This document shows positions 5,325 through 60,515 of a stretch of 64,000 bases of DNA, one piece after another. The stretch covers positions 188,604 to 252,603 of the IMG/VR virus record IMGVR_UViG_3300020810_001156; one strand, given 5' to 3'. The notes below the pieces were generated by a model. It saw only the letters and a list, made by a program, of their open reading frames with translations, did not search any database and had not been told where the DNA came from. How positions within the stretch are numbered: position 1 is the stretch's first letter; every line of letters begins with the position of its first letter. A program made the translations under genes and the position numbers.

Positions 5325-5325
5325 T

Positions 5326-5682
5326 ATGAATGATGTAAACAATTGTAATCACATAAATAATCTATACTTTAGAGCATTTAATGAAAAAAATTTAGATGTA
5401 TTGGCATCTCAAGTATATTCACCAAATGTTGTATTAAAAGATTGGGTTGGTGAATGGGTTGGTAGAGATAATGTTTTGTTGGAAAATAAAAAGTTTTTTG
5501 AAAATGAGTTTACTTTAACAGTTGAAAATACAATTATGGGATTTGATAATGATATGCACTTAGTTACTGCAAAAAATGATATTGTTATTGAGATTGGTGG
5601 AGAAACTATAAACGCAGTTGATGAATTAGTATTTGAACAAAATTCATCACGCATAAGAAGTATTACAGCATATAAAAGATAA
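5326..5682 (+). CDS. NTF2/SnoaL-like protein
   Basis: YFRAFNEKNL..YSPNVVLKDW..GRDNV...I.AYK; ATG 5326 preferred over the overlapping start at 5257. Confidence 0.7.
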   Translation: MNDVNNCNHINNLYFRAFNEKNLDVLASQVYSPNVVLKDWVGEWVGRDNVLLENKKFFENEFTLTVENTIMGFDNDMHLVTAKNDIVIEIGGETINAVDELVFEQNSSRIRSITAYKR

Positions 5683-5688
5683 GAAGTT

Positions 5689-6990
5689 ATGAACAAACCT
5701 TTATTAGTATTTCAAGCTCCTGTATTTACTCGAAGTGGTTATGGAGACCATTCGAGAGATATTCTTAGAAGCTTATTTAAAATGGAAAAGTACGATGTAA
5801 AAATTGTACCAATGAGGTGGGGAAATACCCCACAAGACCAAGCAGACCCTTCTACAGAATTTGGTCAGAAGATGTTATCAAATGTTGTAACTCAATTAGA
5901 TAGAAAACCTGATATTTTTATGCAAATGTCAGTTGCAAACGAATTTGAACCAAAGGGTAACTTTAATATTGGTATTACTGCAGGTGTAGAAACTACAATA
6001 CTTCCAAAAGAATTTATTGAAGGTTCTAATAAAATGGATTTAATAATAGTACCATCAGAATTTACAAAAAAATTAATGATTGGAACTGCATATCAAGAAA
6101 AAAATCAACAAACAGGTCAAATTGTACGAGAAATTAGAGTTACAAAACCAGTTGAAGTTTTATTTGAAGGTGTTGATTTGGATAGATACTTAAACTACCC
6201 AAAATCGGATACTGATATCTTAGAAGGTATTCAGACTGATTTCAACTTCTTATTTGTAGGACATTGGTTAAAGGGGCATTTAGGGCAGGATAGAAAAGAT
6301 ATTGGAATGATGATTAAAACATTCGCTACTGTATTTAAATTTTTACCAATGGAAAAAAGACCTGGTCTTATTCTTAAAACATCTCACGCTGGATTTTCTG
6401 TAATTGATAGAGAAAATATTAGAGAAAAGGTTGATAATATTCTTAATGGTATGGATAAAAAGGATATTCCACCAATTTACATATTACATGGTGATTTAGA
6501 TGATACAGAAATGGGTCAACTATATAATCATCCAAAAGTAAAGGCAATGGTATCATTTACCAAAGGTGAAGGATACGGTAGACCACTTGCAGAATTTGCT
6601 TTAAGTGGTAAACCTATTATTGTTTCAAGGTGGAGTGGTCAAGTTGATTTCTTACCTGAACAACATACTGTTTTCTTAGATGGACAATTAACTCCGGTAG
6701 ATGAATCAGCAGCTGATAAATTTATCTTAAAAGATTCTAAATGGTTTAGTGTAAACTACTCAGATGCAGCAAATAAATTTTATAAAGTTTTTAATGAATA
6801 TGATTCTTATTTAAAACAATCAGCTGGATTAAAAACAAATATTATCAATAATTTTAGTTTGGAAAAAATGGATAAAGTTTTTGAAGAAATGATGGAAAAT
6901 TACACATCATCGGTTCCTCAAATAAAACCATTTAATTTACCCAAATTGAATAAAAATAAAATGAATATTCCTAAATTAAATAAAGTATAA
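5689..6990 (+). CDS. GT-B (GT4-like) glycosyltransferase
   Basis: RSGYG, RKDIG, KGEGYGRPLAEFALSGKPII. Confidence 0.85.
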   Translation: MNKPLLVFQAPVFTRSGYGDHSRDILRSLFKMEKYDVKIVPMRWGNTPQDQADPSTEFGQKMLSNVVTQLDRKPDIFMQMSVANEFEPKGNFNIGITAGVETTILPKEFIEGSNKMDLIIVPSEFTKKLMIGTAYQEKNQQTGQIVREIRVTKPVEVLFEGVDLDRYLNYPKSDTDILEGIQTDFNFLFVGHWLKGHLGQDRKDIGMMIKTFATVFKFLPMEKRPGLILKTSHAGFSVIDRENIREKVDNILNGMDKKDIPPIYILHGDLDDTEMGQLYNHPKVKAMVSFTKGEGYGRPLAEFALSGKPIIVSRWSGQVDFLPEQHTVFLDGQLTPVDESAADKFILKDSKWFSVNYSDAANKFYKVFNEYDSYLKQSAGLKTNIINNFSLEKMDKVFEEMMENYTSSVPQIKPFNLPKLNKNKMNIPKLNKV

Positions 6991-14612: not shown

Positions 14613-15220
14613 TGAATAAAATAAAATTTGATATTGGTGCTAATAGTGGAAGTGATACTAGAAGAATGGCTTCGGATGGTTCTATTGTTTACGCATTTGA
14701 ACCAACACATGAATTATTAATGAATCATCTCTGGCCACTTTCTAATCAGAATCCAAATATAAAAGTTATACCATTTGCGGTTGATGTTAAAAACTCATTC
14801 CAAACATTCAATATTTCTGCAAATAGAGATTGGGGTTGTAGTAGTTTATATGAGTTTTCCGATGATATAGAGAAGAAATGGCCAAACAGACCCGATTTCA
14901 AAAAAACTCATTCTTATGAAGTTCCTACAATAACTTTATATGATTTTTGTAATTTGTATAACATAGATAGGATTGATATGTTACACATAGATGCACAGGG
15001 TAATGATTTTAATGTTCTATTGAGTTTAAAAGACAAAATATCAATAGTTAAAGAAGGGGTGGTTGAAGCATCTGATAAAGTTGATTTATACAGTGGAGCT
15101 ACCAATAGAATAGAATACATAAGATATTTTTTAATATCGAATGGATTTAAGATTGTAAAAGAAACACCTAACGATGTTGTAGGTGCCGAAGTTAATATAA
15201 GGTTTATAAAAAATGATTAA
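14612..15220 (+). CDS. FkbM-family methyltransferase
   Basis: DIGANSG, AFEP, HIDAQGND. Confidence 0.88.
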   Translation: MNKIKFDIGANSGSDTRRMASDGSIVYAFEPTHELLMNHLWPLSNQNPNIKVIPFAVDVKNSFQTFNISANRDWGCSSLYEFSDDIEKKWPNRPDFKKTHSYEVPTITLYDFCNLYNIDRIDMLHIDAQGNDFNVLLSLKDKISIVKEGVVEASDKVDLYSGATNRIEYIRYFLISNGFKIVKETPNDVVGAEVNIRFIKND

Positions 15221-16577
15221 GTTAGTTATATTTGATTTGGATGGTGTTCTTGTTGAAGCAAAAAACATCCACTATGATGCACTCAATGAAGCTTTGGGTG
15301 AACAATACGCAATTAGTTGGGCTGAACACCTATCAACTTACGATGGATTAAAAACCAATCAAAAGTTGGAGATGTTGAGTGAGATAAAAGGATTACCAAC
15401 CGAACTACACAAAGAGATTTGGGAAGGTAAACAAAAATTGACATTACAAAAGTTGAAAGAGTTAAAACCAAACCAAACTCTACAATCGGTAATGAACGCA
15501 TTGGTTGAGGATGGATACAAAATAGCAGTTTGTTCCAATTCAATCAGAAAGACAGTTTTGACTGTACTTTCAAAGTTGGGTATTATGGAGTTTATGGATT
15601 ACATCATCTCAAACGAAGATGTACAAAACTCTAAACCACACCCTGAGATGTATTGGAGAGCAATCTCAAAGATGGGATGTTTACCATCTGAAACTCTAAT
15701 CGTAGAGGATTCACCTTATGGGTTACTTGCAGCATCTCGTTCTAACGCTCATGTGTTGAGAGTTAGAAATCCACAAGAAGTAACCTACACAAACATATTT
15801 AAAAAATTAACTGAAATAGAAATGGGACAAACAAATGATAAACCAAAATGGGTGGATAATAAGTTAAATGTATTAATTCCAATGGCTGGAGCTGGTAGTA
15901 GATTCCAACAAGCAGGATACACATTTCCAAAACCACTAATTGATGTGGAAGGTAAACCTATGATTCAGGTCGTGGTAGAAAATCTAAACATCGAAGCAAA
16001 TTATATCTATGTAGTTCAGAAATCACATAGGGAGAAATTCAATTTGGATACCTTACTTAATCTTATTACTCCTAATTGTAAGATTGTAGAAGTAGATGGT
16101 ATTACCGAAGGAGCAGCTTGTACTGCACTTTTGGCTAAAGAACATATTGATAACGATAATCCATTATTCTTCGCTAACTCAGACCAATTTGTAGAATGGG
16201 ATTCAAATGAGTTCTTCTACAAAATGAATGAGAACGATGCTGATGGTGGTATCCCAACATTCAAAGCAACTCACCCAAAGTGGTCATTTGCTAAGTTGGA
16301 TGAAGATGGTTTTGTGACCGAAGTGCAAGAGAAAAACCCAATCTCAGATTTAGCAACAGTGGGTTTCTATTATTGGAAACATGGTTCTGATTTTGTGAAA
16401 TACGCTGAAGAAATGATTGAGCAGGATATTAGAGTAAACAATGAATTCTATGTTTGTCCTGTTTACAACAACGCAATTAAAGGTGGATTAAAGGTGAGAA
16501 CATTTGATGTACCAAAGATGTGGGGACTTGGAACACCTGAAGATTTGAATAGATACTTAGAGAATTATGGTAAGTAG
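15213..16577 (+). CDS. HAD phosphatase fused to sugar nucleotidyltransferase
   Basis: FDLDGVL, SKPHPE and EDS in the N-half; IPMAGAGSRF..PKPLI and LGTPEDL in the C-half. Confidence 0.88.
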   Translation: MIKLVIFDLDGVLVEAKNIHYDALNEALGEQYAISWAEHLSTYDGLKTNQKLEMLSEIKGLPTELHKEIWEGKQKLTLQKLKELKPNQTLQSVMNALVEDGYKIAVCSNSIRKTVLTVLSKLGIMEFMDYIISNEDVQNSKPHPEMYWRAISKMGCLPSETLIVEDSPYGLLAASRSNAHVLRVRNPQEVTYTNIFKKLTEIEMGQTNDKPKWVDNKLNVLIPMAGAGSRFQQAGYTFPKPLIDVEGKPMIQVVVENLNIEANYIYVVQKSHREKFNLDTLLNLITPNCKIVEVDGITEGAACTALLAKEHIDNDNPLFFANSDQFVEWDSNEFFYKMNENDADGGIPTFKATHPKWSFAKLDEDGFVTEVQEKNPISDLATVGFYYWKHGSDFVKYAEEMIEQDIRVNNEFYVCPVYNNAIKGGLKVRTFDVPKMWGLGTPEDLNRYLENYGK

Positions 16578-17256
16578 TGATAACAAATATACCAAAATGC
16601 AAAAGGGTGCGTATAGAAGTGGAACTTCTAACCATCCTGAGCATAATGGTAATCCCGATTATTGGAATATTCTTTTAGGTGATTTAAAAGATAGAGATAG
16701 TTGGGTAAATAAAGTTGGTTTAGATTTTGCTTGTGGTAAGGGTAGAAATGTAACAAATATGTTATCTTTATCCGATTGGAAACGAATTGATGGTATTGAT
16801 ATCTCAGAAGCTAACATTGTTTATTGTAAGGAAAATTATAAAGGACAAGATAGTGATTGGTATGTAAATAATGGAGTTGATGTATCTCAATTGAAAAATA
16901 ACGAATATGATTTCATCATGTCAACCATCGCACTACAACATATTCCAGTATATGATATCAGAAAATCACTAATAACCGATTTACTTAGAACTTTGAAACC
17001 AGGTGGAATATTTTCATTCCAAATGGGATATGGTCAGGAAATAAAACCAAATGAAAATAGATATCCATACCACACAAACCATTATGATGCTGGTGGAACT
17101 AATTCACATTCTGATGTGAGGGTACAAAGTGAATCTGAAATTATAGAAGATTTAACAAACATTGGATTTATCAATATAGAAACATATGTGAGAGATACAT
17201 TCTCAGATAATGGACATCCTCAATGGATATATGTAAAAGCTTATAAACCAGAATAA
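16567..17256 (+). CDS. Class I SAM-dependent methyltransferase
   Basis: LDFACGKG, GIDIS, LQHI, LKPGG. Confidence 0.85.
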   Translation: MVSSDNKYTKMQKGAYRSGTSNHPEHNGNPDYWNILLGDLKDRDSWVNKVGLDFACGKGRNVTNMLSLSDWKRIDGIDISEANIVYCKENYKGQDSDWYVNNGVDVSQLKNNEYDFIMSTIALQHIPVYDIRKSLITDLLRTLKPGGIFSFQMGYGQEIKPNENRYPYHTNHYDAGGTNSHSDVRVQSESEIIEDLTNIGFINIETYVRDTFSDNGHPQWIYVKAYKPE

Positions 17257-18486
17257 ATGAAAAGAATAACATTTGTAATACCTTGTAGAAGTAATCTACC
17301 ATATCTACAACAAGCCGTAGGTTCTATTGAAGAACACTATGGTAATTCGCATGATGTGGTAATCTTAGATGATGCATCTGATGATAATAGTTGGAATTGG
17401 ATTACTGAATACTCAGAAGGTAGGGATAATATAATCGCTTATAGAAACGAAGGACCTGATAGAGTTGGACACACTGTATTGTATGATGTTGGTTTTGATT
17501 TAGCAAAAACCGAAGTAGTATCAATTCTACACTCGGATATGGTGGTAACACCAAACTATGTGGAAAATATGTTGAAACACTTAGAAGTAAAAAAGGTAGT
17601 TTCAGCAACTCGAATTGAACCACCACTTCATCCACCTGGTCCTGAAAAGTATGTACAAAACTTTGGATTAGAAGTAGATGAGTTCTCAGAACAAAAAGAA
17701 AACTTTTTAAACTTCGTATCACAAAAGGAAATAGAAAATGAGGGTAAAGTTACTGATGGTATATTTGCACCTTGGATGATGTACAAAGAAGATTTTGTTG
17801 ATATTGGTGGGCATGATTTCTTATTCGCACCAATGGAGTTAGAAGATTCTGATATCTTTAATAGATTTTTTCTAAATGGATACGAGTTGATTCAAAGTAG
17901 AGATGCATTTGTATATCATATGACTTGTAGGGGTAGTAGGTTCAAAGATGGAATTGAAATTGAAAAAGAAATTCCACTACCCGATGGCACAATTTGGTAC
18001 AAACCAAAAGATTCCGAAGAGTACACTATTCTAAGACAACACAAATTTAGAGAATGGTGGAGAAAGTGGCATACTGATGTATTACATGATGAATTTATGA
18101 TGCCAATCGTTCCAAGTAGATATGATACTGGATTTATTGTTAAAAATTGTAATACTCAAATTCTATCCATCTTAGAACCTTGGTGTGATACAATCTATGT
18201 TGATTGTGATTACAAAGCATATGTAGATGCTGAAAACGAAAAATCTGAATATGATATATCGGAATCGGTTAAACCATATGATAATGAAAAGAACAATCAC
18301 ATATTGATTTCATTTGATGCAAGTAAATTAACAAATCAACACTTTACTGAATTCATCAAACAATTACCATTCATCATTGAAGAAACTGGTCAAACTGGTT
18401 CATTTAATTGGGATATCTTTCAAATAGATATTATCTCTTTAGAAGAAGTTGATATGATTAAACCACATTTTAAAAATATATTTTAA
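17257..18486 (+). CDS. GT2 glycosyltransferase
   Basis: FVIP, DDASDD, HSDM, EDSD. Confidence 0.85.
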   Translation: MKRITFVIPCRSNLPYLQQAVGSIEEHYGNSHDVVILDDASDDNSWNWITEYSEGRDNIIAYRNEGPDRVGHTVLYDVGFDLAKTEVVSILHSDMVVTPNYVENMLKHLEVKKVVSATRIEPPLHPPGPEKYVQNFGLEVDEFSEQKENFLNFVSQKEIENEGKVTDGIFAPWMMYKEDFVDIGGHDFLFAPMELEDSDIFNRFFLNGYELIQSRDAFVYHMTCRGSRFKDGIEIEKEIPLPDGTIWYKPKDSEEYTILRQHKFREWWRKWHTDVLHDEFMMPIVPSRYDTGFIVKNCNTQILSILEPWCDTIYVDCDYKAYVDAENEKSEYDISESVKPYDNEKNNHILISFDASKLTNQHFTEFIKQLPFIIEETGQTGSFNWDIFQIDIISLEEVDMIKPHFKNIF

Positions 18487-21511: not shown

Positions 21512-22189
21512 GTGATTAAGTTAACTGACATATTAAATGAAGATTGTTGGAAGGGCTACAAACAAATTGGTGGCAAAATGAAGAATGGAAAGATGGTGCC
21601 AAATTGTGTTCCTGAATCGGTTGAAGAAAACTCAATCAATGAAGCTTCAATGACTGTTTCAATTGCAAATGTTGTAGATGAACTTTTTCCAAAGGAATTC
21701 TTTTGGGTTTATAATCCACAAGATAAAGAAAGAGTAAAATCTGTGATTGGTGATTTGGTTAGAACTCTAAATACTTTCTACAAAAAGCAAGGTATTAAAG
21801 TTAGATTTACAGATTCTAATATTAGAATGAAAATGTACACTAAAGAATCGGCAAGAGAGGATTTAACATCTTCAGAGAGATTAGAACTATATAAGTTATA
21901 CTCAAAGGCGATGAAAGCAATGCCACAATCTCCAAACCAAAAAAAGATTATCAAACAAATTAATGTGTTAAGAACCAAAGCTGGTATGAAACCATTAAAA
22001 GAGGTAACTTTGAATGAGATTGGTATTTTTAATATACAAAGTTACACAAAGGGGATTTTACCTGCAGGATATATGGATACAACAACTCCTCAGAAAAAAG
22101 AAAAATATCGTTCAACAGTTAGAGATTTAATGCAAACATTAAATTCTTTTTGGAAAAGAAATAATATACCATTTAGAGTAAGAAAATGA
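21512..22189 (+). CDS. Modular protein with MIKLTDILNE leader and CWKGY..VPNCV module
   Basis: GTG start; internal NSINE and TLNE linkers; duplicated module. Confidence 0.6.
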   Translation: MIKLTDILNEDCWKGYKQIGGKMKNGKMVPNCVPESVEENSINEASMTVSIANVVDELFPKEFFWVYNPQDKERVKSVIGDLVRTLNTFYKKQGIKVRFTDSNIRMKMYTKESAREDLTSSERLELYKLYSKAMKAMPQSPNQKKIIKQINVLRTKAGMKPLKEVTLNEIGIFNIQSYTKGILPAGYMDTTTPQKKEKYRSTVRDLMQTLNSFWKRNNIPFRVRK

Positions 22190-22813: not shown

Positions 22814-25300
22814 ATGGCAGATAATGTAAAAATATCAGATTTAACGGAATTAATATCGGGCTCTCTTAGAGATGTTACGATTTTTCCGGTTGTAGATGGT
22901 GGTGCAACCCAAAAAGCTACATTACTATCTCTACAACAATATCTTGCTGATACTTTAGCAACTGATAGTGAATTAACAGCACAAATTTCTAATGTAAATT
23001 CTACAATAAATGGATTGGATACAGATGATATAAGTGAGGGTTCAACTAATCAGTATTATACAAACGCAAGAGTTAATCAAATAATTCAAGGATTAACAAT
23101 CATAAGTGGTTCGGGTCAAATTGAAGATTTAGGATTTATTTCTTCAGGTACTAATATTGGACCACTAAATATATTTACAGCATCTTACTACGAAGATTCT
23201 GCATCCTTTGAGACAAGAATTTTAGCAATATCTGCTAGTAGTGGAGATACTACGCCACAAGGAACTGTATCTAGTTCACAACAAATTACCGATTTAGGGT
23301 TTATACAATCATCAACAATTGATTCTTTATTTATTGCAGATAGATTACCAATTGATATTCTATCTTCATCAGAACAATTAGGACAATTAATTGCAATTAA
23401 TGGTGGTACTAATGTAACTGTTACTTCTGGTAGTGGTGACCAATTAAGTATTGAAATTTCATCTACTGGTGGTGGAGGTGGCGGAGTTGAATATGATTCT
23501 GAATATGAAATCGTTTCACAATCAAACATTACTGATGAATCTAATGCTAGATTGAGTGGTATGTTGATAAGAGCTAATGATGAAACTACATTCGCTAACT
23601 TCTCAGCATCTGTTGCTGCTGGTGCTGGTGGAGGTGGTGGTTCTACTGATTACATTTCAAATGTATCAAACACAATAGCTCATACAATTTCATTTACTGG
23701 AGTTGGTTCAGCATTTAATGGAAGTATAAATCTACCCGATGGTATTGTATCATCATCAACTCAAATTGAAGATTTGGGATTTGCTGGTGGTGGAGAAAAC
23801 ATTATAGTTAGTGGATTACAAGCATATACTCAATCATTAAAATCAGTAGCTATAATTTCTGGCTCACAACAAATTACTGATTTTGGATTCGTTTCAGAAT
23901 CATCAACAACTATTCCACAGGGAACTATTTCTGGTTCACAACAAATTACCGATTTAGGATTTCTTAGTAGTTCAGCCGATTTAACTGGTATTACATCATC
24001 TGCTGGTGTTGTACTTGCTGACGCTGATAACACTGGATTTGATACATCATTTGTAGGAGAGAACCCATCTAACTTATATTATACTGATGCTAGAGTTGAA
24101 ACTCACTTAGGGGTTATAGGTTTATTAACAGGTTCACAAGGATTAGCTAGTGGTTCGGTAACTTCATCCGCACAAATTAATTATGGTGAAATTAGAAATA
24201 TTCCTAAATTTTGGGGTGATGGCGTAACTATATCATCTGGTTCATCAGGTGATACTGCAAATTATATCCAAATTACATCAGCTGGTGGTGGTAGTGGTAC
24301 ATTATCATCCGAGTTCTACTCATTTACCGCATCATATGAATTAGAAAAAGTTAATTTTATAACTGGTTCTTCACAAATTGAAGCTTTAGGATTTGACCCT
24401 AATGCTGGTGAAGTTGTAACTTTAAACGCTTGGACTGGTTCTGGTGGAGCATTTGGTATATTCTCACAATCAGTAGTAAACCAAATTGAAAACTTAGAAA
24501 CTGGTTCACTTACTGATGATTTCAACTCATTATTGGAAAAAGATTTATTCTCAGGTTCTGCTCAAGTTAATTACGCACAAATACCTGATATACCAGACTT
24601 TGTAGCTGGTCCTGGTATAGTAATCGCAATTAGTGGTAGTTCATTTGGACAAACCTTTGAAATTAGTAGTAGTGCAGCTTCTGGAGATTTTACAACATTA
24701 ACTGGAGTTCCAGAAGGATTAGTATCATCATCAACTCAAATTGAAAATTTAGGATTTGCAACAACTGGATACGCTGATGGTGTTGGTACAACAACTTCAC
24801 AATCATTAGAATCAACATTTAATGGATTTAGAGGTGATATAGGTGCTATTCAAGCCGATTACGCTAATTTGGGTGGTAACACATTTACTGGTTCTCAATT
24901 AATCAAAGCTTTAGTAACAGTTGATGAGGTTTATGTAACTGGTTCATTATCTTTAACTTCTGGTGAGGGTAAAATAAAAGTTAATACTGGGATTCCTTCG
25001 GATATAGTACAAATGACTGGTTCATTTAAAGTAACGGGTTCGATTGAAGCAGATGAGTTTATTGTAGGTTCTGCAGGAACACCAACCATTTCATCAGCAA
25101 CTAATATTGAAGTATCGGCATCGGCTGATATTAATATGATAGCTCAGGAAGTTAACATTACTGATGTATTAACAATAACTCCAAGAACAACAACACCTTC
25201 ATCACCATCATCTGGTAGTTTTATTGTAAGTGGTAGTGGAGCAACTATAAAGCCATTCTTCTATGATGGCAATCAATGGCAAGAGATATCATTCGTATAA
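22814..25300 (+). CDS. Ser/Gly/Thr-rich virion structural (tail fibre-like) protein
   Basis: N-terminal VKISDL, TDDISEGSTNQYYTNARV motif, about 10 S[GS]S.Q[IV]..LGF-type repeats, C-terminal FYDGNQW. Confidence 0.7.
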   Translation: MADNVKISDLTELISGSLRDVTIFPVVDGGATQKATLLSLQQYLADTLATDSELTAQISNVNSTINGLDTDDISEGSTNQYYTNARVNQIIQGLTIISGSGQIEDLGFISSGTNIGPLNIFTASYYEDSASFETRILAISASSGDTTPQGTVSSSQQITDLGFIQSSTIDSLFIADRLPIDILSSSEQLGQLIAINGGTNVTVTSGSGDQLSIEISSTGGGGGGVEYDSEYEIVSQSNITDESNARLSGMLIRANDETTFANFSASVAAGAGGGGGSTDYISNVSNTIAHTISFTGVGSAFNGSINLPDGIVSSSTQIEDLGFAGGGENIIVSGLQAYTQSLKSVAIISGSQQITDFGFVSESSTTIPQGTISGSQQITDLGFLSSSADLTGITSSAGVVLADADNTGFDTSFVGENPSNLYYTDARVETHLGVIGLLTGSQGLASGSVTSSAQINYGEIRNIPKFWGDGVTISSGSSGDTANYIQITSAGGGSGTLSSEFYSFTASYELEKVNFITGSSQIEALGFDPNAGEVVTLNAWTGSGGAFGIFSQSVVNQIENLETGSLTDDFNSLLEKDLFSGSAQVNYAQIPDIPDFVAGPGIVIAISGSSFGQTFEISSSAASGDFTTLTGVPEGLVSSSTQIENLGFATTGYADGVGTTTSQSLESTFNGFRGDIGAIQADYANLGGNTFTGSQLIKALVTVDEVYVTGSLSLTSGEGKIKVNTGIPSDIVQMTGSFKVTGSIEADEFIVGSAGTPTISSATNIEVSASADINMIAQEVNITDVLTITPRTTTPSSPSSGSFIVSGSGATIKPFFYDGNQWQEISFV

Positions 25301-25311: not shown

Positions 25312-26922
25312 ATGAGAACCTACAATGTAATACTCAAAAAAGGTGTAGATTATGAATCGTTTTGGGATGATATGGAAAATGAAAACGATGGGGGTAATCT
25401 TTATATCCCTAATCGTAGAGTAGATTCTCCTAACCTTAGACCAGATTCACAAAGACAAACTTGGTACACTCTTTCGGATGAAGAAGCTGAAACTGTAAGA
25501 AATGATGAAAGAGTTCTTGCAGTTGAAATTCCACCCGAAGATAGGGATGATATCGTAATTGGACATCATGCAATCCAAGAGGGTGTATTTACCAAAACAA
25601 CTTCTGATAGTGGTAATTATCAAAATTGGGGATTAATAAGAACTTTATCTAAATCAAATAATTATGGTAGTTCAAATACCTCACCAACTACTGAATATCC
25701 ATATTCATTAACTGGTAAGGGGGTTGATGTTGTAATTCAAGATAGTGGTATTCAAATAGACCATCCAGAATGGGCAGATAGATTTGAATCGGTAGATTGG
25801 GATACATGGGGTGCTTTTACACAATCATCAAATCACGATAGAGATTATGATGGACATGGTTCACATTGTGCTGGTATTGTAGCAGGTAAAACATTTGGGT
25901 ATGCTAAAAAAGCAAAAGTATATCATCAAAAGATAAGTGGATTAGAAGGTAGTGGTGATAGTGGAACTGGTATTTCACCAACCTATGCATTTGATGCTAT
26001 TAAAGGTTGGCATAATGCTAAATCAGTTGACCCAAATACTGGGTATGTTAGACCAACTGTGGTAAATATGAGTTGGGGTTATCTGAGAACATTTACAAAT
26101 GCTCAAATATCAAACATAAATTATAGAGGTACTGATTATAGTGGTACTGATATTGATACTACAACTGAAAGAGAAAACAATTACGGATTGATGTATTCAT
26201 TGTATTCAGTATCAGGTCCAACATATGCTAGTAATTTAAGAATAGCATCGGTTGATACTGATATTGAAGAGTTGTTAGAAGCGGGTGTTCATGTGTTTGT
26301 TGCTGCTGGAAATAGGAGTAATAAAGTAGATGAGAGTGGTGGTGCGGATTATGATAATAATTATACACACACATCATCGGGTACAACTTACTATCACAGA
26401 GGTTCTTCTCCATATGGTGATGCAGGGCAAGATGGAACTGGACCAAGAGCAATCATAGTTGGTAATATGGATTCATCAGTACATGATACCACAACTGATA
26501 GAAAAGCAACATCATCGGAAACTGGACCTGGTGTTGATATCTATGCACCTGGTACAAATGTTATGAGTGCAACTTCTAATACAAATAAGTGGGGAAGTGG
26601 TTCTCAAAATTATTATTTGAATTCATCATTTAAGCAAACTAATATATCTGGTACATCTATGGCATCTCCTCAAGTTGCAGGTGTTGCTGCATGTATTTTA
26701 GAATTATATCCACAATGGACACCATCTCAATTAAAACAATGGTTACTGGATAATGCAGGTTCTGCAATCTTAAATACTGGTACTGATAATGATTGGACAA
26801 ATGATAGAAGTTTGAAAGGTGGAGCAGAAAAAGTATTACATTTACCATTTACTTCATCAGAACCTGCAAAAATAAGTGGTTTCGATAATTTAACCTTTAA
26901 CATAAAAATCAAAGAACAATAA
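25312..26922 (+). CDS. Subtilisin-like S8 serine protease
   Basis: Triad motifs VVIQDSG, DGHGSHCAG and SGTSMASPQVAG; oxyanion AAGN; N-terminal prodomain. Confidence 0.92.
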   Translation: MRTYNVILKKGVDYESFWDDMENENDGGNLYIPNRRVDSPNLRPDSQRQTWYTLSDEEAETVRNDERVLAVEIPPEDRDDIVIGHHAIQEGVFTKTTSDSGNYQNWGLIRTLSKSNNYGSSNTSPTTEYPYSLTGKGVDVVIQDSGIQIDHPEWADRFESVDWDTWGAFTQSSNHDRDYDGHGSHCAGIVAGKTFGYAKKAKVYHQKISGLEGSGDSGTGISPTYAFDAIKGWHNAKSVDPNTGYVRPTVVNMSWGYLRTFTNAQISNINYRGTDYSGTDIDTTTERENNYGLMYSLYSVSGPTYASNLRIASVDTDIEELLEAGVHVFVAAGNRSNKVDESGGADYDNNYTHTSSGTTYYHRGSSPYGDAGQDGTGPRAIIVGNMDSSVHDTTTDRKATSSETGPGVDIYAPGTNVMSATSNTNKWGSGSQNYYLNSSFKQTNISGTSMASPQVAGVAACILELYPQWTPSQLKQWLLDNAGSAILNTGTDNDWTNDRSLKGGAEKVLHLPFTSSEPAKISGFDNLTFNIKIKEQ

Positions 26923-26959
26923 CAACTTTTTAGGTTTTTAATATATATTTATAGAGTAG

Positions 26960-29431
26960 ATGGGATGGAGTGAGAAATATAAGAAATCAATAGATTGTAA
27001 CAACCCAAAAGGTTTCAGTCAAAAAGCCCATTGTGCTGGTAAAAAGAAAAACGAAGATATGGTATTTGAAGAAATAACCGAAGATATTCTAAATGAAAAG
27101 CTGATTACCTATGGTAATAGAAAACCATATGGTCAAGTAGTTTTTATGGCAGGTGGAGCTGGTAGTGGTAAAGGATTCGCTATCAAAAACTTTGTAGATT
27201 CTGCATCTTTCAAAATTAGAGATGTGGATGAAATGAAGAAACAACTTCAAATTCTCAATAGATTAGGTAAATTAGATATTAGAAGTATCCTAAAAAAGTA
27301 TGGTAGAAATATCAAACTTAAAGATTTAGATTTAATCAGAAAGATTGAAAAGGATGGGTACAAACTTCAAAACTTTAATCTTAAAAATCCAGACCATGTA
27401 ATGGCCCTTCACATTTTAGTAAAGGCAATGGGTATTAAAGATAATACTTTAGAAAAACTATTATTGGGTAAAAATAATCCTGAAACTCTTCCAAACATTT
27501 TATTTGATATCACCGCAAAGGATGTAACCGATATCACTTCAGTTGTTCCAAAATTAAAAGAAGTTGGATACAAAGCAGATAATATTCACTTAACTTGGGT
27601 ACTTACAAATTATGTAACTGCAATGGTTAATAATAAGAATAGAGCTAGAATGGTACCTGAGGATATCCTTTTAAAAACACATGAAGGTGCTGCAAATACT
27701 ATTTGGGGATTAGTAACTAAAGCTCTTCCAAAAGGAATGAATGGTAGAGTTGATGTAATCCTTAATAACCCAGAACACACTGTATTCTATACTGATACAG
27801 ATGGTAAAACTATTAGTGGTGGTGTAAAGGGATTCCTCTCACTTCCACTTAAAAAAGAAAAGGGTGGTATCTTTCCAGAAAAAGTTTGGAAAGATAAGTT
27901 ATTCAATTGGGTTAAAGATAATGCACCAGAATCAATCACATCAAATATGAAAGAATCAGTAAACGAAGGTAAGAAATCCAAAGATTCTACCGGTGTAAGA
28001 AAAGCAGAAGCTATTCATAATAATGCAGATACAATCATTGATTTGGTACTTAAAGATAAAAAAGATGTTAAAGAAGTAGTAAGTGTAATGGGGCCTGTAT
28101 TGATTAATGCAATAAAAGCAACTTTAAAACATAAGTTCAAACCAATTACTGGTAATGAAGATGCATTAAAAAAGTTTCAATCTAAACTAAAAGATTTCCT
28201 TAAATTCACAGAAGCGTTAGTTAAAAAACCATCAAAGGTTGGTGTTAAAAGACTTGAAACTATGCACAGAGAATGGTGGAATTGGAACCATGGTGCAGAT
28301 GTAGTATTAAATGGAAAAATAGGAAATACTATCATTGAATCAGTAAACGAAGGAAAATTCAAACCATCACAAGTTCGTTCAGCAATCTCAAAAGTTAAAA
28401 AAGGACTAATGAGAAAGTGGAAACAAAAAGGTGGATACGAAAACTTTGGACAAAAAGAACTATCTCAAATGAAAGATAAGTTTGATTACAATGCATATGG
28501 AGATAAGGATGAAAGAGAAATTTCACATATGTTAGATGCATTTGATAATTGGGCAATGAACTACGATGGTAATATGAGAGAAGCAAGAAGGTCAGTAGTT
28601 CACAAAGCTGCAAAGAAAGGAAGTTTTCCAGTATCTTTAGTAGTGGTTAAAAATGGTAAAGTAATTGACCAAGAGTTAGTAAAAACTCCAGAAGCTGTAC
28701 CTGCTGCATTTAATGTTATTCAATCAAAACACAAAGGAGCTACTGTTCATATTGAAGATAAAACAGGTAAAAGATTATTTTCAGAATCAATAGATGAGGG
28801 TATGTTCTCCCTTATAGACCAAATCAGAGATGAATCTAAGAATGTTAAAGATTTTATTAAGAATGTTCTTTCTGATAGAAACTTTAAGGATATGAAAAAC
28901 GATAAACAATTTATCCAATACTTAGGTTCTATCTATGAATCGGTAAACGAAGCAATGGATATCAATGACCCTATCTTAGTAAGATTGAGAGCATCAGCGA
29001 TTGAAAAAGCTGAAAAAGAAAAATTAGCAAAAATAAGAGCAGCCCAAATGAAGAAAAACCAAATGGCTGCTAAAAAACTCCAACAAGCAGAACTCAAAAT
29101 CAAAGCACTCAAAAAGAAGAGAGCAGAGGTAATGAGAGATATGGAACAAGAAGCTGAAGCAGAAGGTGGACCAATCGCTGATAGATATGGTAACTTATTA
29201 AATAAGATTGATAACGATATCATCAAATTGGGAGGTAATCCAATGAGTGAATCAATCGAAGAAAGAATCAATCTATTCGTAGAAGAAAACGTACCAACTA
29301 AACCAGACAAATGGTCATATGCAGTTTCTCAAGCAAAAGAGAAATTTGATGTATATCCATCGGCATATGCAAATGCATGGGCTTCCAAGAAATATAAAGA
29401 ACTTGGTGGTGGTTGGAGAAAGAAAAAGTAA
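26960..29431 (+). CDS. Modular polyprotein-like protein containing a zeta-toxin/AAA_33-like P-loop kinase domain
   Basis: FMAGGAGSGKG, N..R.RMVP; modules separated by ESVNE, ESIDE and ESIEE. Confidence 0.65.
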   Translation: MGWSEKYKKSIDCNNPKGFSQKAHCAGKKKNEDMVFEEITEDILNEKLITYGNRKPYGQVVFMAGGAGSGKGFAIKNFVDSASFKIRDVDEMKKQLQILNRLGKLDIRSILKKYGRNIKLKDLDLIRKIEKDGYKLQNFNLKNPDHVMALHILVKAMGIKDNTLEKLLLGKNNPETLPNILFDITAKDVTDITSVVPKLKEVGYKADNIHLTWVLTNYVTAMVNNKNRARMVPEDILLKTHEGAANTIWGLVTKALPKGMNGRVDVILNNPEHTVFYTDTDGKTISGGVKGFLSLPLKKEKGGIFPEKVWKDKLFNWVKDNAPESITSNMKESVNEGKKSKDSTGVRKAEAIHNNADTIIDLVLKDKKDVKEVVSVMGPVLINAIKATLKHKFKPITGNEDALKKFQSKLKDFLKFTEALVKKPSKVGVKRLETMHREWWNWNHGADVVLNGKIGNTIIESVNEGKFKPSQVRSAISKVKKGLMRKWKQKGGYENFGQKELSQMKDKFDYNAYGDKDEREISHMLDAFDNWAMNYDGNMREARRSVVHKAAKKGSFPVSLVVVKNGKVIDQELVKTPEAVPAAFNVIQSKHKGATVHIEDKTGKRLFSESIDEGMFSLIDQIRDESKNVKDFIKNVLSDRNFKDMKNDKQFIQYLGSIYESVNEAMDINDPILVRLRASAIEKAEKEKLAKIRAAQMKKNQMAAKKLQQAELKIKALKKKRAEVMRDMEQEAEAEGGPIADRYGNLLNKIDNDIIKLGGNPMSESIEERINLFVEENVPTKPDKWSYAVSQAKEKFDVYPSAYANAWASKKYKELGGGWRKKK

Positions 29432-29481: not shown

Positions 29482-29967
29482 ATGGCAAAAGGTAACATAT
29501 ACTGGTTTACAGGCCAACCGGCTCACGGAAAAACTGTACTCGGTAAGAAGTTAGTCGAACTCCTCCAAACCGAGAAAAGAAATTGGAGAAAAGATGTATT
29601 CCATGTAGATGGTGATGACCTAAGAGCCCTCACTGTAAATAAAGATTATTCAGAACAAGGTAGAATTGATAACATTCGTAGAGCTCAGATGATTGCTGAG
29701 TATCTTTGTAATAACGAATGTGATGTGGTCGTATCATTAGTAGCACCTTATGAATGGTTAAGAGAAGAATTTAAAGAAAGAATCGGTTTAGATAATTTTC
29801 AAGAGTTCTATGTACATTGCGCTACTCCAAGAGAAAGAGACCACTTCCATGCAAAGGATTATGTAGCACCTCAAAAGAATTTTTTTGATGTTGATACTAC
29901 AAAAGACAATCCGAATCAATCATTCACAAAAATCGTAAATCATTTAAGAGAAACAAATAAGTTATAA
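29482..29967 (+). CDS. cysC: Adenylyl-sulfate (APS) kinase-like protein
   Basis: WFTGQPAHGKT, DGDDLR, YSEQGRIDNIRR, VSLVAPY..RE, Y.AP. Confidence 0.8.
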   Translation: MAKGNIYWFTGQPAHGKTVLGKKLVELLQTEKRNWRKDVFHVDGDDLRALTVNKDYSEQGRIDNIRRAQMIAEYLCNNECDVVVSLVAPYEWLREEFKERIGLDNFQEFYVHCATPRERDHFHAKDYVAPQKNFFDVDTTKDNPNQSFTKIVNHLRETNKL

Positions 29968-30365
29968 TGGCAAATTTTCAAGCAAAAGCAGACAAAGAGA
30001 GTTCCTCTACGGAAAAGAAATATTCAGTATTTTTCGGGAGATGGCAACCATTTCACAAAGGTCACTATTGGCTAATTAATGAAAGGTTGAAAGAAGGAAA
30101 AAATGTGTGGGTAGCAATCAGAGATGTAAAACCTGATGAGAAAAACCCTTGGACAGCACATGAAATAATGATGAACCTTTCAGAGGAATTAAAAGACCTC
30201 ATTGAAGAAGGTAAAATCTTTTTATCAATTGTTCCTGATATTGAATCAATCAATTATGGAAGAGGGGTAGGATACGATGTAATTGAACACGTACCACCAC
30301 AAGAAATAGGTGAAATCTCTGCAACTTCTATTAGAGAACAAATGAAAAAAGATGGTAAGTTATAA
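29967..30365 (+). CDS. HxGH nucleotidyltransferase (cytidylyltransferase-like)
   Basis: GRWQPFHKGH, ISATSIR. Confidence 0.8.
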   Translation: MANFQAKADKESSSTEKKYSVFFGRWQPFHKGHYWLINERLKEGKNVWVAIRDVKPDEKNPWTAHEIMMNLSEELKDLIEEGKIFLSIVPDIESINYGRGVGYDVIEHVPPQEIGEISATSIREQMKKDGKL

Positions 30366-30610: not shown

Positions 30611-31177
30611 ATGGAAGATGTTACAAATGGGGAATCATTATTTCCCCAATATGACCCAACCAAAGATTTATCACAAGCACCTAAACAAAGAACCAAACGA
30701 GGTTTAGGAGCCAGACCACTTTTAGAATCTGAAATCAAAGAGATACAACAAAAGGCTCGTTCTGCGGCAGAAGCTGCAAGAATGTTGGGTGTATCCTATA
30801 ACACATATAAAAAATACGCTAAAGAATATGGTATCTTTGAGGATTTGAAAAATCCACATGGTATTGGTATTCGTAAGGGAACTAATCCTGGTACATTAGC
30901 ACATTCTTTAGATGATATTTTAGAAGGAAAGTATCCAGATTATCCAGTTTGGAAACTTAAAAAGAGATTACTCAATAATGGGTATATGTTAGAGAAGTGT
31001 AACAACTGTGGATTCGAAGAAAGAAGGGTAACTGATTTCAGAGTTCCATTGGTGTTAGATTTCTTAGATGGGGATAGATGTAATCATAAACATGAGAATC
31101 TTAGGATGTTATGTTTTAATTGTTCATTCCTTATAAATGGCAACCTTACAGGTCCAAAAAAAGAGTACGAATATTAA
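30611..31177 (+). CDS. HTH + degenerate HNH-fold protein
   Basis: SAAEAARMLGVSYNTYKKY HTH; C..CG, LDFLDG...N....NL..LC.NC. Confidence 0.65.
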   Translation: MEDVTNGESLFPQYDPTKDLSQAPKQRTKRGLGARPLLESEIKEIQQKARSAAEAARMLGVSYNTYKKYAKEYGIFEDLKNPHGIGIRKGTNPGTLAHSLDDILEGKYPDYPVWKLKKRLLNNGYMLEKCNNCGFEERRVTDFRVPLVLDFLDGDRCNHKHENLRMLCFNCSFLINGNLTGPKKEYEY

Positions 31178-46452: not shown

Positions 46453-47619
46453 ATGAAAAAGATGATTTTATGTGGATTGATGTTGCTGATGGGTACATCA
46501 TCTTTTGCTTCTCACCTATTGGGTGGGTACATTCAAACAACTCAAAGGAATTCAAGTGATACTGTTGATGTGGTAGTAACTTTATTTACTGACCCTCAAG
46601 GAATTGGTAATCCAACTTCTATTTCTTTAGCGGAATGGAAATTGGTAAATGGTTTTTATCAAACCAATGGTAACTTTACACTTTCTCAACAACTAACTGG
46701 AAGTTGGCAAGGTGTAAATGTGTATGTGTATAGTGGTATTAGAATATTAAGTAGTGGTGATTATCGTTTCATCTACACCAATTGTTGTAGAGGAATGTTG
46801 AGTAACGCATCATCTGCAATGAATAGTAACTTTACTATTGCAATGGATTACAAAAAATCACTTCTACCAAACTCAGCACCTATCATTCTCAACCCACTTC
46901 CAATCAATTGGGTAAATGGTGATACTGCACAATCAATTCTATTTGCGGTAGATGTAGATGGTGATTCGGTAATGGTTGAAAAGGATGATGCTATTAACCA
47001 ACACTCAAACAATACATTTGTACCACTTTCACCATTTACTCAATTAGGTAGTTATGGTAGTTATTATGTGGATGTAAATGGAACAATTGAATGGGCTCCA
47101 AATACCAATGGAACATTTGGTACTGGATATAAAGTAAGTGAAATCAGAAATGGACAAGTTATTGGAGTGAATAGAATTCAACAAGTCTATATGGTTCAAC
47201 CTGGTTCAACACCAAATGTACCAAACTTAAACCCAATGATTACAGCCGATTTGGTAAATGGTGATTCACTTCAATATACCACATCCATTTCAAACGCAAC
47301 TTCAACTGAGTTGATTATTCCAAATGTAGATGTAACTCAAACTTCAGATTCAACTTGGACTTTGAATAATCTTCAAATGGGAACATACAATGGAGTATTG
47401 AGAGCTAGTAGTAACTCATCAAATATGGATTATTACATTACTTTAGTGGTAACATCTACAATCGGAATCGAAGAGAATGTTTCAGATATGGATACTTCTT
47501 ACGAAGTTTACGATTGGACTGGAAAATACATTGGTAAAGATGTAAATTGGGAGCAATTAAATGGTTTGTATATAATTAAACATAGTAACGGAACAATAGA
47601 AAAAATCTACAATATATGA
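46453..47619 (+). CDS. Secreted protein with a T9SS-type C-terminal domain
   Basis: Signal peptide + ASHLLGG, NCCR, NSAP, DVDGDS; tail IGIEE..YDWTGK..GLYIIK..GTIEK. Confidence 0.65.
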   Translation: MKKMILCGLMLLMGTSSFASHLLGGYIQTTQRNSSDTVDVVVTLFTDPQGIGNPTSISLAEWKLVNGFYQTNGNFTLSQQLTGSWQGVNVYVYSGIRILSSGDYRFIYTNCCRGMLSNASSAMNSNFTIAMDYKKSLLPNSAPIILNPLPINWVNGDTAQSILFAVDVDGDSVMVEKDDAINQHSNNTFVPLSPFTQLGSYGSYYVDVNGTIEWAPNTNGTFGTGYKVSEIRNGQVIGVNRIQQVYMVQPGSTPNVPNLNPMITADLVNGDSLQYTTSISNATSTELIIPNVDVTQTSDSTWTLNNLQMGTYNGVLRASSNSSNMDYYITLVVTSTIGIEENVSDMDTSYEVYDWTGKYIGKDVNWEQLNGLYIIKHSNGTIEKIYNI

Positions 47620-48473
47620 AGATATTAGTAACTGGCGGGAACGGCTTTATCGGTTCAAATCTAATTAAGAAACTATTATCTGAAGGACACGAAGTGGTAT
47701 CTTTGGATGATTTATCAACTGGGTTAAAAGAGTACGAAGTTGAAGGATGTAATTATGTTTATGGAGATATTGAAAATCTTCTGTATTGGAAAGGTGAATC
47801 TTTTGATTTATGTTATCATCTCGCTGCGTTAGCTAGAATCGTTCCATCATTTGAGGACCCGATGGAAACCTTTAGAGTAGACACTCAAGGTGTAATGGTA
47901 GTTGCTGAATGGGCTAGACAAAATAATGTAAAGGTTGTATATAGTGGTTCATCATCTCGTTGGTGTAATCCCGAAACTTCACCATATGCAACTTGTAAAA
48001 AATTAGGTGAAGATATTCTCAAAATGTATCGAACTGCTTATGGATGTGATTTTGAAATCGCAAGATTCTATAATGTATATGGACCAAATGAATTGGTTGA
48101 TGGACAGTGGGCAGCTGTGATTGGTATTTGGAGAAAACAAATCGAAGAAGGTAAACCAATCACAATTATATCAGATGGAGAACAAAGAAGAGATTTTACT
48201 CATGTAGATGATATTTGTGATGCTCTATATAAGATTGGTACAAGTGATAAAAAGCATGAAGATGCTTGGGAATTGGGTACAGGTATGAATTACTCAATTA
48301 ATGAAGTATTTGATTTCTTCCAAGAATCATTTGGTGATTTGGAAAAAGTACATCTGCCTGATGTACCAGGAAATTATAGACAAACTCTTAGAGAGAATGA
48401 TGATACTTTGGAGAGATTGGAATGGGCACCCAAAGATAGTTTAAGAGATTATATTTTATCTCTTAACAAGTAA
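47616..48473 (+). CDS. NAD-dependent sugar epimerase/dehydratase
   Basis: TGGNGFIG, YATCK, RFYNVYGP, RDFTHV. Confidence 0.9.
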   Translation: MKILVTGGNGFIGSNLIKKLLSEGHEVVSLDDLSTGLKEYEVEGCNYVYGDIENLLYWKGESFDLCYHLAALARIVPSFEDPMETFRVDTQGVMVVAEWARQNNVKVVYSGSSSRWCNPETSPYATCKKLGEDILKMYRTAYGCDFEIARFYNVYGPNELVDGQWAAVIGIWRKQIEEGKPITIISDGEQRRDFTHVDDICDALYKIGTSDKKHEDAWELGTGMNYSINEVFDFFQESFGDLEKVHLPDVPGNYRQTLRENDDTLERLEWAPKDSLRDYILSLNK

Positions 48474-56568: not shown

Positions 56569-58197
<1,629 letters not shown>

Positions 58198-59684: not shown

Positions 59685-60515
59685 ATGAGAAGAATAATCA
59701 TTTTAATACTTTTAGGATTTCTATTAACATCTTGTGGAAGTATGTATCAATTTTCCACAATCAATCACACACCAGAATATATTGGTGATGTGAGAGTTGA
59801 TAAGATTGAAAATAGAATGGATTTGAATTGGAAGTTAAGAACTGATAATCAATTCAGATGGAATTTTGCTCAATATGCACAGAACCAACCTTTGAGTTGG
59901 TATTACGATAACTCTTGGGAGTTAGGATTATATACGAACCCATACTTTACTACTTGGGATTTTTACTTCAATAGAACTCAACTTTGGTGGGATTGGAGTT
60001 TCAACTATCCTTACAATTGGGGATGGAACCGTTGGTATCCATTTGGATACAATAGATGGGGTTGGAACTATGGATTCAGAAACAATTGGGCATGGGGATA
60101 TAATCCTTACAGATGGAATAGTGGATTTGTTCATAATCCTCAACCAATAAGAAATAGAAATGTTGTTGTGGTGAATGGTAGAAGAGGTTCTAACAACACA
60201 AACATTATAATAAACAGAGGCAGGTCGAATAATTCGACCACCAATAATTCCAATGTTAGAGTTAGAAGGTATGATAACAAAGATAGAATTGTACCTCGTA
60301 GAGATTATAACGATATAAAGAGTAGAGTTAGAACACCTATAAACAATAACTCAACACCTACGAGAAATTATAATGTACCAAGACCTAATAACAATAACAA
60401 TATAAGAAGAACTCCACCACCGCCTCCAACAAGACCTGTGGTTAGACCAAATGTAAGTAGAGGTTCAAATGTAGGTAGAAGTTCATCTCAGGTTATCAAA
60501 AGAAATAATGAGTAA
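59685..60515 (+). CDS. Lipoprotein with W/Y/N-rich and R/N/P-rich low-complexity regions
   Basis: Lipobox LTSC; WGWN repeats; disordered tail. Confidence 0.65.
   Translation: MRRIIILILLGFLLTSCGSMYQFSTINHTPEYIGDVRVDKIENRMDLNWKLRTDNQFRWNFAQYAQNQPLSWYYDNSWELGLYTNPYFTTWDFYFNRTQLWWDWSFNYPYNWGWNRWYPFGYNRWGWNYGFRNNWAWGYNPYRWNSGFVHNPQPIRNRNVVVVNGRRGSNNTNIIINRGRSNNSTTNNSNVRVRRYDNKDRIVPRRDYNDIKSRVRTPINNNSTPTRNYNVPRPNNNNNIRRTPPPPPTRPVVRPNVSRGSNVGRSSSQVIKRNNE

Follow-up and report, generated by a model that had tools for sequence, protein, structure and literature searches.

How can a single phage gene encode a chain of apparently unrelated small proteins, and what becomes of that chain? The question is raised by an open reading frame (ORF) of 823 amino acids (aa) at positions 26960-29431 (+ strand) of the window, by which we mean the whole stretch of DNA that was analysed, namely the terminal 64 kb of the 252,603-bp viral contig IMGVR_UViG_3300020810_001156 (also Ga0181598_1000003). 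The product of the ORF (ATG start, no internal stop), of 93 kDa and pI 9.6, had been described in a first-pass annotation of this stretch as a string of modules that a T4-type prohead protease would release for injection into the host. The internal proteins of phage T4 are the classic case of phage proteins that are injected together with the DNA. Based on the evidence presented here, we consider it probable that the product is a polyprotein composed of internal proteins of the T4 type, which would be cut in the prohead and of which at least some pieces would be injected.

A repeated joint divides the 823-aa protein into modules

The pattern ES[IVLM]xE, our strict definition of the joint, occurs at aa 332, 460, 609, 660, and 764, corresponding to nucleotides (nt) 27953, 28337, 28784, 28937, and 29249, which are exactly the places where the first-pass annotation had put its linkers. 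Five joints per protein compare with 0.045 expected from the amino acid composition, and none of 20,000 shuffled sequences reached this number. A six-frame scan of the window found the pattern six times, five times in the polyprotein and once in ORF 21512-22189. The recurrence of the linker DNA, which had also been reported, was recovered as exactly three copies (27953, 28337, and 28937) of the 16-nt core GAATCRGTAAACGAAG, compared with 0.07 expected even with two mismatches. The joint pattern is thus present in the polyprotein and is not due to chance. Across 223 distinct sites the joint reads E-S-V(75%)/I(20%)-N(78%)-E↓G/A(59%), where the arrow marks the predicted cut. Two further linkers of the first-pass annotation, ILNE (aa 43-46) and MRE↓A (aa 539-542), likewise act as joints, and NMRE↓A is a recurrent homology breakpoint. 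A third one, FVEE, is not a joint, since it belongs to RINLFVEEN, the conserved sequence with which the last module begins. Cleavage at all joints would yield fragments of 5-32 kDa, six of the eight with a pI of 9.2-9.8.

The chain, all of it on the + strand, opens with a mini-module that contains a Cys pair (aa 1-33, KYKKSIDCNNPKGFSQKAHC; 26960-27058). Copies with 89% identity occur in mosaic proteins (346 aa) of other marine phage contigs, where the unit directly precedes the PSAYAN unit described below; some orthologues lack it and begin at the equivalent of aa 34-46. This next segment (MVFEEITEDILNE; 27059-27097) resembles a capsid-targeting sequence (CTS) and has a predicted cut after E46, the following residue being K. 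Aa 47-336 (27098-27967; 32.5 kDa, pI 9.7) form a Zeta/AvrRxo1-like P-loop kinase module, which ends in joint 1 (ESVNE↓G; 27953-27969, first copy of a 17-nt direct repeat). The adjacent module of 128 aa (aa 337-464; 27968-28351; 14.4 kDa, pI 9.8), to which no function was assigned, is found at other positions in the homologues P0003-5 and P0018. Its end coincides with joint 2 (ESVNE↓G; 28337-28353), the second copy of the repeat. It is followed by a 77-aa module (aa 465-541; 28352-28582) that ends in the degenerate joint NMRE↓A and is a separate module (cluster 24) in other homologues, and by a 72-aa module (aa 542-613; 28583-28798; cluster 20) that ends in ESIDE↓G and is inserted between other modules in P0027, P0030, and P0034. 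Next come an acidic helical module of 51 aa (aa 614-664; 28799-28951; cluster 10) with the terminal joint ESVNE↓A and a 104-aa long-helix module (aa 665-768; 28952-29263; cluster 7) that ends in ESIEE↓R; the latter contains a 60-residue helix in the AlphaFold2 (AF2) model and has a counterpart in gene 191 of Flavobacterium phage vB_FspM_immuto (hereafter immuto), followed there by ESVNEG. The terminal mini-module PSAYAN..GGGW (aa 769-823; 29264-29428; phrog_27331) is DUF5872-like. The underlying Pfam match (E = 4.8e-4) came from one scanned member of a module family, and its assignment to this unit is our own. The unit is the last module in 28 of the 120 homologues analyzed below and also occurs in cyanophage S-BM3, in a gene adjoining that of the small terminase subunit (gp16).

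Both terminal units had been singled out by the first-pass annotation, and both proved to be real, widely distributed mini-modules. Mosaic proteins composed of short, highly conserved mini-modules of the types WFKEKWV.., KYKxSIDCxNPKGFSQKAHC, PSAYANGW..GGGW, and CWxGYKQ..VPNCVP were observed in L018-L032 (e.g., L018 9725-10762) and in Synechococcus phage S-BM3 (SBM3_00185; L037 1171-2184). Such proteins are widely distributed among marine phage contigs and T4-like cyanophages, and two of their units cap the polyprotein of the window. The kinase and the cassettes look as if they had been inserted between the Cys-pair and PSAYAN units.

AF2 models were obtained for the kinase module and, from a clean alignment, for aa 614-823 (overall pLDDT 68.5, moderate confidence); when module fragments were aligned by MAFFT with the full-length protein or with aa 337-823, several of them were misplaced. 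In the model of aa 614-823, the only internal segments with pLDDT <50 were aa 660-666 and 765-775. These are the two joints, which form coil between helical units, an outcome in favor of the independent domains for which the first-pass annotation had proposed a check. Pfam searches with 89 non-kinase module families returned DUF5872 and one spurious coiled-coil match only, and no peptidase. PHROGs searches returned only families of unknown function, and NCBIfam gave nothing useful for any module.

The joint fits the cleavage rule of T4-type prohead proteases

An IMG/VR search with the capsid protein of a sister contig located the head module of the same contig in its 95.6-117.2-kb region (L041). 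This region encodes a portal protein (PF07230, E = 1.9e-72), a prohead protease of 195 aa assigned to Peptidase_S77 (L041 5629-6216; PF03420, E = 3.7e-29, compared with E = 1.8e-3 for S80), an acidic gp22-like scaffold, and a gp23 capsid protein (PF07068, E = 2.3e-76). The protease carries gp21-like end sites (..NLFE↓G and ..PMNE↓S), and the predicted propeptide of the capsid protein ends in ..QLLDE↓A. The T4 protease gp21 follows the rule L/I-X-E with cleavage after Glu, which was first seen as cutting of a Glu-Ala bond (PMC9026906). T4 processing is blocked when Asp takes the P1 position of the CTS (PMC9026906). Since the joint keeps hydrophobic-x-Glu and the genome encodes an S77 protease, the joint fits a gp21-type rule and is predicted to be cleaved. 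The reasoning of the first-pass annotation, which had started from T4-type prohead proteases in general, hence agrees with both the gene content and the published rule.

The head module itself also contains joint-bearing ORFs, one of 353 aa with ESVNE↓S and ESVNE↓A and one of 294 aa with ESVNE↓G and ESINE↓G. Some modules of the 294-aa ORF resemble, as judged by eye, module families of the kinase polyproteins. In the joint-bearing head-module protein at L041 4556-5617, a (Cys-Gly)5 run with a weak metallothionein-like Pfam match directly follows the first ESVNE↓S. A sister lineage (L012-L015), whose kinase is ~65% identical, has its genes arranged as follows: gp20, two small ORFs, a pair of joint-rich ORFs, gp21, an ORF of 188 aa, a joint-rich ORF of 802 aa, a 474-aa ORF, scaffold, and gp23. 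The 474-aa ORF consists of a DUF3008-like module, ESVNE, and the kinase, so that the kinase and three other joint-rich ORFs are located between gp20, gp21, and gp23. This order places the joint-rich proteins at the positions of T4 prohead-core genes.

A Zeta/AvrRxo1-like kinase with a putative T4-type targeting sequence

The kinase module, announced by the first-pass annotation as a P-loop kinase of ~285 aa, has a Zeta-toxin-like fold of 290 aa. It matches phrog_5268 (E = 2e-42) and was modeled with high confidence (pLDDT 95.7, pTM 0.91). The top Foldseek matches were 4z8q, 3q8x, 1gvn, and 2p5t, with probability 1.0. The best solved structures comprise AvrRxo1 and the zeta/PezT toxins (E 8e-6 to 1e-3) as well as the kinase domain of bacterial Pnkp (Pnk). 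Features common to the module and to Zeta, PezT, and AvrRxo1 are the P-loop, an Asp located ~20 residues beyond the Walker Lys, and a lid-like motif rich in Arg. The type III effector AvrRxo1 is an injected kinase that acts on NAD (PMC5491322, PMC5087710). Identity to these proteins is only 10-12%, with TM scores of only 0.41-0.44, and the Pfam Zeta_toxin match (PF06414), the sole Pfam match in the whole window protein, reached 19.7 bits and thus stayed below the gathering cut-off of 22.3. Some homologues carry a precomputed PF06414 match. Sequence searches against chains of the Protein Data Bank (PDB), with single sequences and with profiles, gave P-loop-level or spurious (de novo TIM barrels) matches only. 

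An alignment of 74 kinase sequences keeps Walker A, D44, H105, D137, N179, R182, R184, H195, and K252; of these, we call Walker A, D44, D137, N179, R182, and R184 invariant. With its invariant residues of catalytic type, the kinase is apparently catalytic. Inteins are usually located at functionally important sites. In ORF-187 of Tenacibaculum phage PTm5 (L036 4909-6750; AP019525 139964-141805), an intein-like insert of ~330 aa splits the P-loop (GGAG, C....N, SGKGF), which points in the same direction as the conserved residues of catalytic type; PTm1 is a further cultured Tenacibaculum phage with ORF-187. No antitoxin partner was seen among the neighboring ORFs, to which this inspection was confined.

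Clustered at 50%, the kinase family comprises 793 representatives. Among the 117 with a recognizable P-loop, 116 carry a [LIVMF]xE motif 12-32 residues upstream of it, immediately preceding the conserved KLIxF/Y sequence with which the domain begins. Stand-alone members open with, for example, MKNFKQYLTE↓K or MLTFSQFITE↓K. The respective starts are MKSFKDFVSLDE↓A in RB43 ORF241c, MKSFKQFTESTLTE↓A in a KP15-like Klebsiella phage, MNFKEFCQLDE↓A in Cronobacter S13, and MKLFETINE↓S in PTm5, and the T4 record gives MKTYQEFIAE↓A for IPIII and IPII and MKTFKEFTS...ITE↓A for IPI. The segment MVFEEITEDILNE of the window protein aligns with the propeptides of the RB43, Klebsiella, Cronobacter S13, and PTm5 homologues and with those of T4 IPI, IPII, and IPIII. 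The T4-type CTS of the stand-alone relatives ends at the same position as this segment, and some orthologues start exactly there. Stand-alone kinase homologues in the Straboviridae start almost like T4 IPI (MK-S/T-F-K-x-F...TE↓A); the Cronobacter S13 kinase gene is located downstream of lysozyme and tRNA genes, which recalls the e/ipIII/ipII region of T4. Judging from these sequences, a Zeta-like kinase that bears a putative CTS is widespread in T4-like phages, and its recognition appears to be new. In the literature searched, where journal coverage was incomplete, we came across neither the joint nor the polyprotein arrangement, nor any mention of the kinase as an internal protein. As the kinase with its T4-type targeting sequence is present in cultivable RB43, RB16, and KP15-like Klebsiella phages and in Cronobacter and Aeromonas phages, injection of the kinase is directly testable in laboratory E. 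coli and Klebsiella systems.

Modules are gained, lost, and reordered at the joints

A search with the full protein retrieved 834 homologues of 450-1380 aa; identity is about 90% over the first ~41% of the protein, and the remainder varies. Module analyses were done with the best 120 of the 834 homologues, which were split at the strict joint. The resulting 526 segments fell into 95 families, and the 120 homologues displayed 87 different architectures. They hold 1-11 modules each, compared with about eight in the window protein, and the kinase is followed by members of 37 different families.

The boundaries of these changes coincide with the joints. A first test based on all BLAST HSP (high-scoring segment pair) ends was noisy (16% vs. 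3% within 3 aa) and was superseded by an analysis of sharp homology transitions. Among 671 sharp breakpoints, 82% were located within ≤6 residues of a broadly defined joint, compared with 10.5% for positions drawn at random (at most 14.9% in any of 200 trials). The other breakpoints were mostly located at variants of the joint (e.g., NMRE↓A and GIDE↓A), which retain hydrophobic-x-Glu. The alignment of aa 614-823 revealed whole modules inserted between ..GGNPM(S/T)E.. and ..IEE↓RINLF... Homologue P0002 lacks exactly 384 nt, the module of 128 codons, with a clean junction in the 17-nt direct repeat GAATCAGTAAACGAAGG (27953 and 28337). The comparison of orthologues envisaged in the first-pass annotation thus found modules gained, lost, and reordered at the joints, and module order is not invariant.

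Exchange extends beyond the kinase gene. ORF 21512-22189 (+ strand) encodes a second CTS-like, joint-bearing protein of 225 aa (GTG start) that begins with (M)IKLTDILNE↓D and contains the CWKGYKQ..VPNCVP mini-motif and one joint, ESVEE↓N. In L002/L003, close to the region homologous to this ORF, an ORF of 620 aa with five joints shares modules with the kinase polyproteins. The second locus takes part in module exchange.

The joint is constrained at two levels. In the close lineage, the 15-mer GAATCAGTAAACGAA accounts for 77% of 61 distinct-context ESVNE sites, compared with 5.7% expected from codon usage in the genes themselves, which indicates homogenization at the DNA level. Codon bias at the joints exceeds that elsewhere for AAC (89% vs. 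38%), TCA (90% vs. 36%), and GTA (98% vs. 56%), and conservation of the joint DNA drops sharply beyond ~16 nt. This synonymous-site conservation is consistent with the earlier proposal that linker DNA offers microhomology for module shuffling, and the identity of joint DNA within the lineage fits repeated recombination or gene conversion at joints. Varying codons encode the same joint peptide in the diverged lineage B and in Flavobacterium phage immuto, which argues that the peptide is under selection in its own right. 

We propose tentatively, as an idea with a little less in its favor than against it, that the joint has two uses. Its peptide would be the prohead-protease site that frees the modules. 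Its DNA would offer 16-17 nt of homology for excising, inserting, and swapping modules within the gene and between several joint-bearing genes of the same phage and of co-infecting relatives. The result would be an integrase-free, in-frame cassette array that recombines the injected proteins of T4-like marine phages. The first-pass annotation had called the array integron-like. Like integron arrays, it lines up exchangeable cassettes, most of them unannotated, between copies of a short conserved DNA repeat, and in this respect the comparison holds. Unlike in integrons, the cassettes are in frame in one ORF, the repeat of 16-17 nt is coding and translated, and exchange presumably proceeds by general or microhomology recombination. 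We set an integron-type mechanism aside: the neighbors are genes for a fibre-like protein, an S8 protease, an APS-kinase-like protein, and a cytidylyltransferase-like protein, and neither an integrase nor a structured site of the attC type was seen next to the gene, so that "integron-like" is an analogy only.

Proposed fate of the polyprotein

Taken together, the motif, the protease gene, shuffling at the joints, DNA-level conservation, the kinase fold, and the family-wide CTS point to the following pathway, in which cleavage, packaging, ejection, and module functions are proposed by homology to T4 internal proteins. The polyprotein would be made late (probably) and enter the prohead core by means of the CTS-like segment, of core-binding modules, or of both. 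Cleavage after the Glu of each joint (E-S-V/I-N/D-E, then G/A) would be due to the T4 gp21-type serine protease of the phage itself (Peptidase_S77) and would produce about eight, mostly basic pieces of 5-32 kDa. The Zeta/AvrRxo1-like kinase, at least, depends on ATP and on a cellular substrate. Its site of action must therefore be the host, which it would reach by ejection together with the DNA in the manner of T4 IPI-III and Alt. For the remaining modules, a role as small host-takeover or anti-defence proteins is most likely. At the DNA level, the 16-17 nt of the joint may serve as short homology for module deletion, insertion, and exchange, both within the gene and between joint-bearing genes.

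Several features link this system to T4 IPI, IPII, IPIII, and Alt, namely a T4-type head module with Peptidase_S77 in the same genome, a CTS-like propeptide ending in hydrophobic-x-Glu, small basic predicted products, and hypervariable gene content among relatives. The T4 internal proteins are small and basic (PMC9026906), and Ip1-3, all three of which are injected, block type IV restriction enzymes (PMC12373910). Unlike the T4 proteins, which are encoded by separate genes and each have their own N-terminal CTS, up to 11 unrelated modules share one ORF here, a near-invariant extended joint separates them, and the CTS-like segment can be internal. A second parallel is provided by head or ejection proteins of the phiKZ type (phiKZ gp175, SPN3US gp245, and 201phi2-1 proteins), in which a gp21-related protease cuts after Glu at several sites, giving fragments that remain in the head and leave it by ejection (PMC9026906, PMC5694885, PMC10052503). 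The phiKZ-type motif is S/A/G-X-E and the protease belongs to S80, whereas P3 is V/I here and the protease scores as S77. The cited literature on phiKZ-type proteins reports neither a cassette array nor conserved joint DNA. What appears to be new is the fusion of many unrelated small modules in one ORF by a near-invariant translated joint that fits a prohead-protease site, and also the use of this joint as the site of module exchange.

If this reading is correct, uncultured T4-like phages pack internal proteins as a polyprotein with borders that can be read from the sequence, and dozens of small dark-matter proteins become candidate injected effectors. The about 90 unannotated module families would amount to a list of candidate host-takeover or anti-defence proteins whose limits are already defined. 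Combinatorial evolution of a virion-delivered arsenal would have a simple mechanism in a protease site that is at the same time a recombination joint.

Points against a cleaved and injected polyprotein, and alternative explanations

A number of observations weigh against a cleaved and injected polyprotein. Targeting in T4 was established for an N-terminal CTS, and the CTS-like segment of the window protein is internal, at aa 34-46 behind the 33-aa mini-module. The window gene is ~100 kb away from the head module and adjoins a fibre-like gene and an S8 protease gene. Bare [IVLM]xE sites number 18 in the protein, compared with 13.6 expected; the L/I-X-E rule is thus loose, and the match to gp21 specificity is carried by the extended, repeated joint and its context. 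With 87 of the 89 module families having no recognizable function, "effector" is used by analogy, and a number of modules could act as scaffold filler and exit from the head.

The protein might instead be an uncleaved multidomain "polyvalent" protein, with the joints as flexible linkers and a 93-kDa chain that is packaged or active as a whole. Polyvalent phage proteins with 2-15 domains, including Zeta-like kinases, are known, and some are delivered unprocessed (PMC5512222). The best viral structural matches of the kinase in BFVD are "Zeta toxin domain" phage proteins (TM 0.81), which include proteins of 700-1140 aa. Like polyvalent proteins, the window protein combines disparate domains in one polypeptide that is thought to be delivered with the DNA and shuffles rapidly (PMC5512222); the authors of that study (Iyer, Burroughs, Anand, de Souza, Aravind 2017) list a Zeta-like kinase and themselves draw the analogy to viral polyproteins. 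The differences are that polyvalent proteins contain an embedded peptidase or anchor domain (MPTase, MuF, and others), are described as being released by such peptidases, and consist of recognizable effector domains. In the window protein, Pfam found no embedded peptidase, the modules would be released at a repeated joint by the prohead protease, and 87 of the 89 module families have no annotation. Moreover, a plain linker would have no reason to keep a hydrophobic P3, Glu at P1, and Gly/Ala at P1' across lineages with different codons, and it would neither equal the CTS end of stand-alone homologues nor recur in head-module proteins beside the protease. We therefore regard an uncleaved chain as unlikely.

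We consider it similarly improbable that the polyprotein is an accessory of the prohead core or scaffold that is cleaved, with most pieces being expelled like the fragments of T4 gp22, gp67, and gp68 instead of being injected as effectors. The joint-rich ORFs of lineage B indeed occupy gp67/gp68 positions around gp21, T4 core proteins are cut into many fragments (PMC9026906), and several modules are simple helices, so that a scaffold role may still apply to some modules. A conserved, apparently catalytic P-loop kinase would be useless inside a capsid, however, and hypervariable module content is typical of conflict genes and not of assembly parts. 

The adjacent subtilisin-like S8 protease of 536 aa (25312-26922; Peptidase_S8, E = 7e-34) might process the polyprotein in the manner of S8-cut cassette precursor peptides. 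The order fibre-like gene, S8 gene, polyprotein gene is kept in nearly all close relatives with enough upstream sequence. Yet lineage B has the kinase and the joints without an S8 gene nearby, with gp21 adjoining instead, the S8 protein also matches tail-fibre PHROGs, cutting after Glu is a hallmark of gp21-type proteases, and the modules are folded domains and not peptides, all of which makes processing by S8 very improbable. Equally little credit is due to the idea that the repeat functions chiefly as DNA or RNA, namely as a site of recombination or regulation, and that the peptide is incidental, since the strong synonymous-site conservation limited to ~16 nt and the indel junctions inside the repeat, which speak for it, are countered by the peptide being kept with varied codons in lineage B and phage immuto, by variant joints that keep hydrophobic-x-Glu, and by the lack of a recombinase gene adjoining the locus.

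Source contig and genomic surroundings

The window has a GC content of ~32%, and all of its long ORFs are on the + strand. Megablast with 24 kb of the window found no close DNA relatives among cultured phages, and no tRNA genes were found in the 64 kb. GroEL and other proteins have their best matches in Bacteroidota phages. The carriers of the polyprotein are a large group of uncultured, ~250-kb marine T4-like phages with Flavobacteriia as probable hosts.

Upstream of the S8 gene, the fibre-like protein (828 aa; 22814-25300) is rich in Ser and Gly and contains repeated SSxQI(T/E)DLGF units. Directly 3' of the polyprotein gene, 29482-30365 encode an APS-kinase-like P-loop protein (PF01583, E = 1.5e-15) and a cytidylyltransferase-like protein, and the APS-kinase-like gene retains this position in relatives. 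A promoter-like box, TATTTATA (26946-26953, + strand), lies 6 nt upstream of the polyprotein ATG. The eight + strand copies in the window (19365, 21250, 26946, 30569, 41975, 59151, 59674, and 63584) are all intergenic and precede ORF starts by a few to ~60 nt; further copies are found among the head and tail genes of this contig (L041 518, 3178, and 11711). Often "ta" or "tta" stands directly before the box. Its overall count is not above chance, and the notable feature is the bias in strand and position. The box looks like a phage promoter element and is the reverse of the T4 late TATAAATA, which itself is not enriched in the window.

Homing-endonuclease-type genes were observed within 1-2 kb of the polyprotein gene or directly after gp23 (HNH-like, window 30611-31177; GIY-YIG/NUMOD in relatives, L200 3896-4594 and L015 14405-15061). 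Auxiliary genes of the window (3933-6990, 15213-18486, 47616-48473, 56572-58197, and 60508-62625) encode several glycosyltransferases, a HAD-hydrolase/kinase fusion, a nucleotide-sugar epimerase, the GroEL chaperonin, and a tRNA nucleotidyltransferase-like protein.

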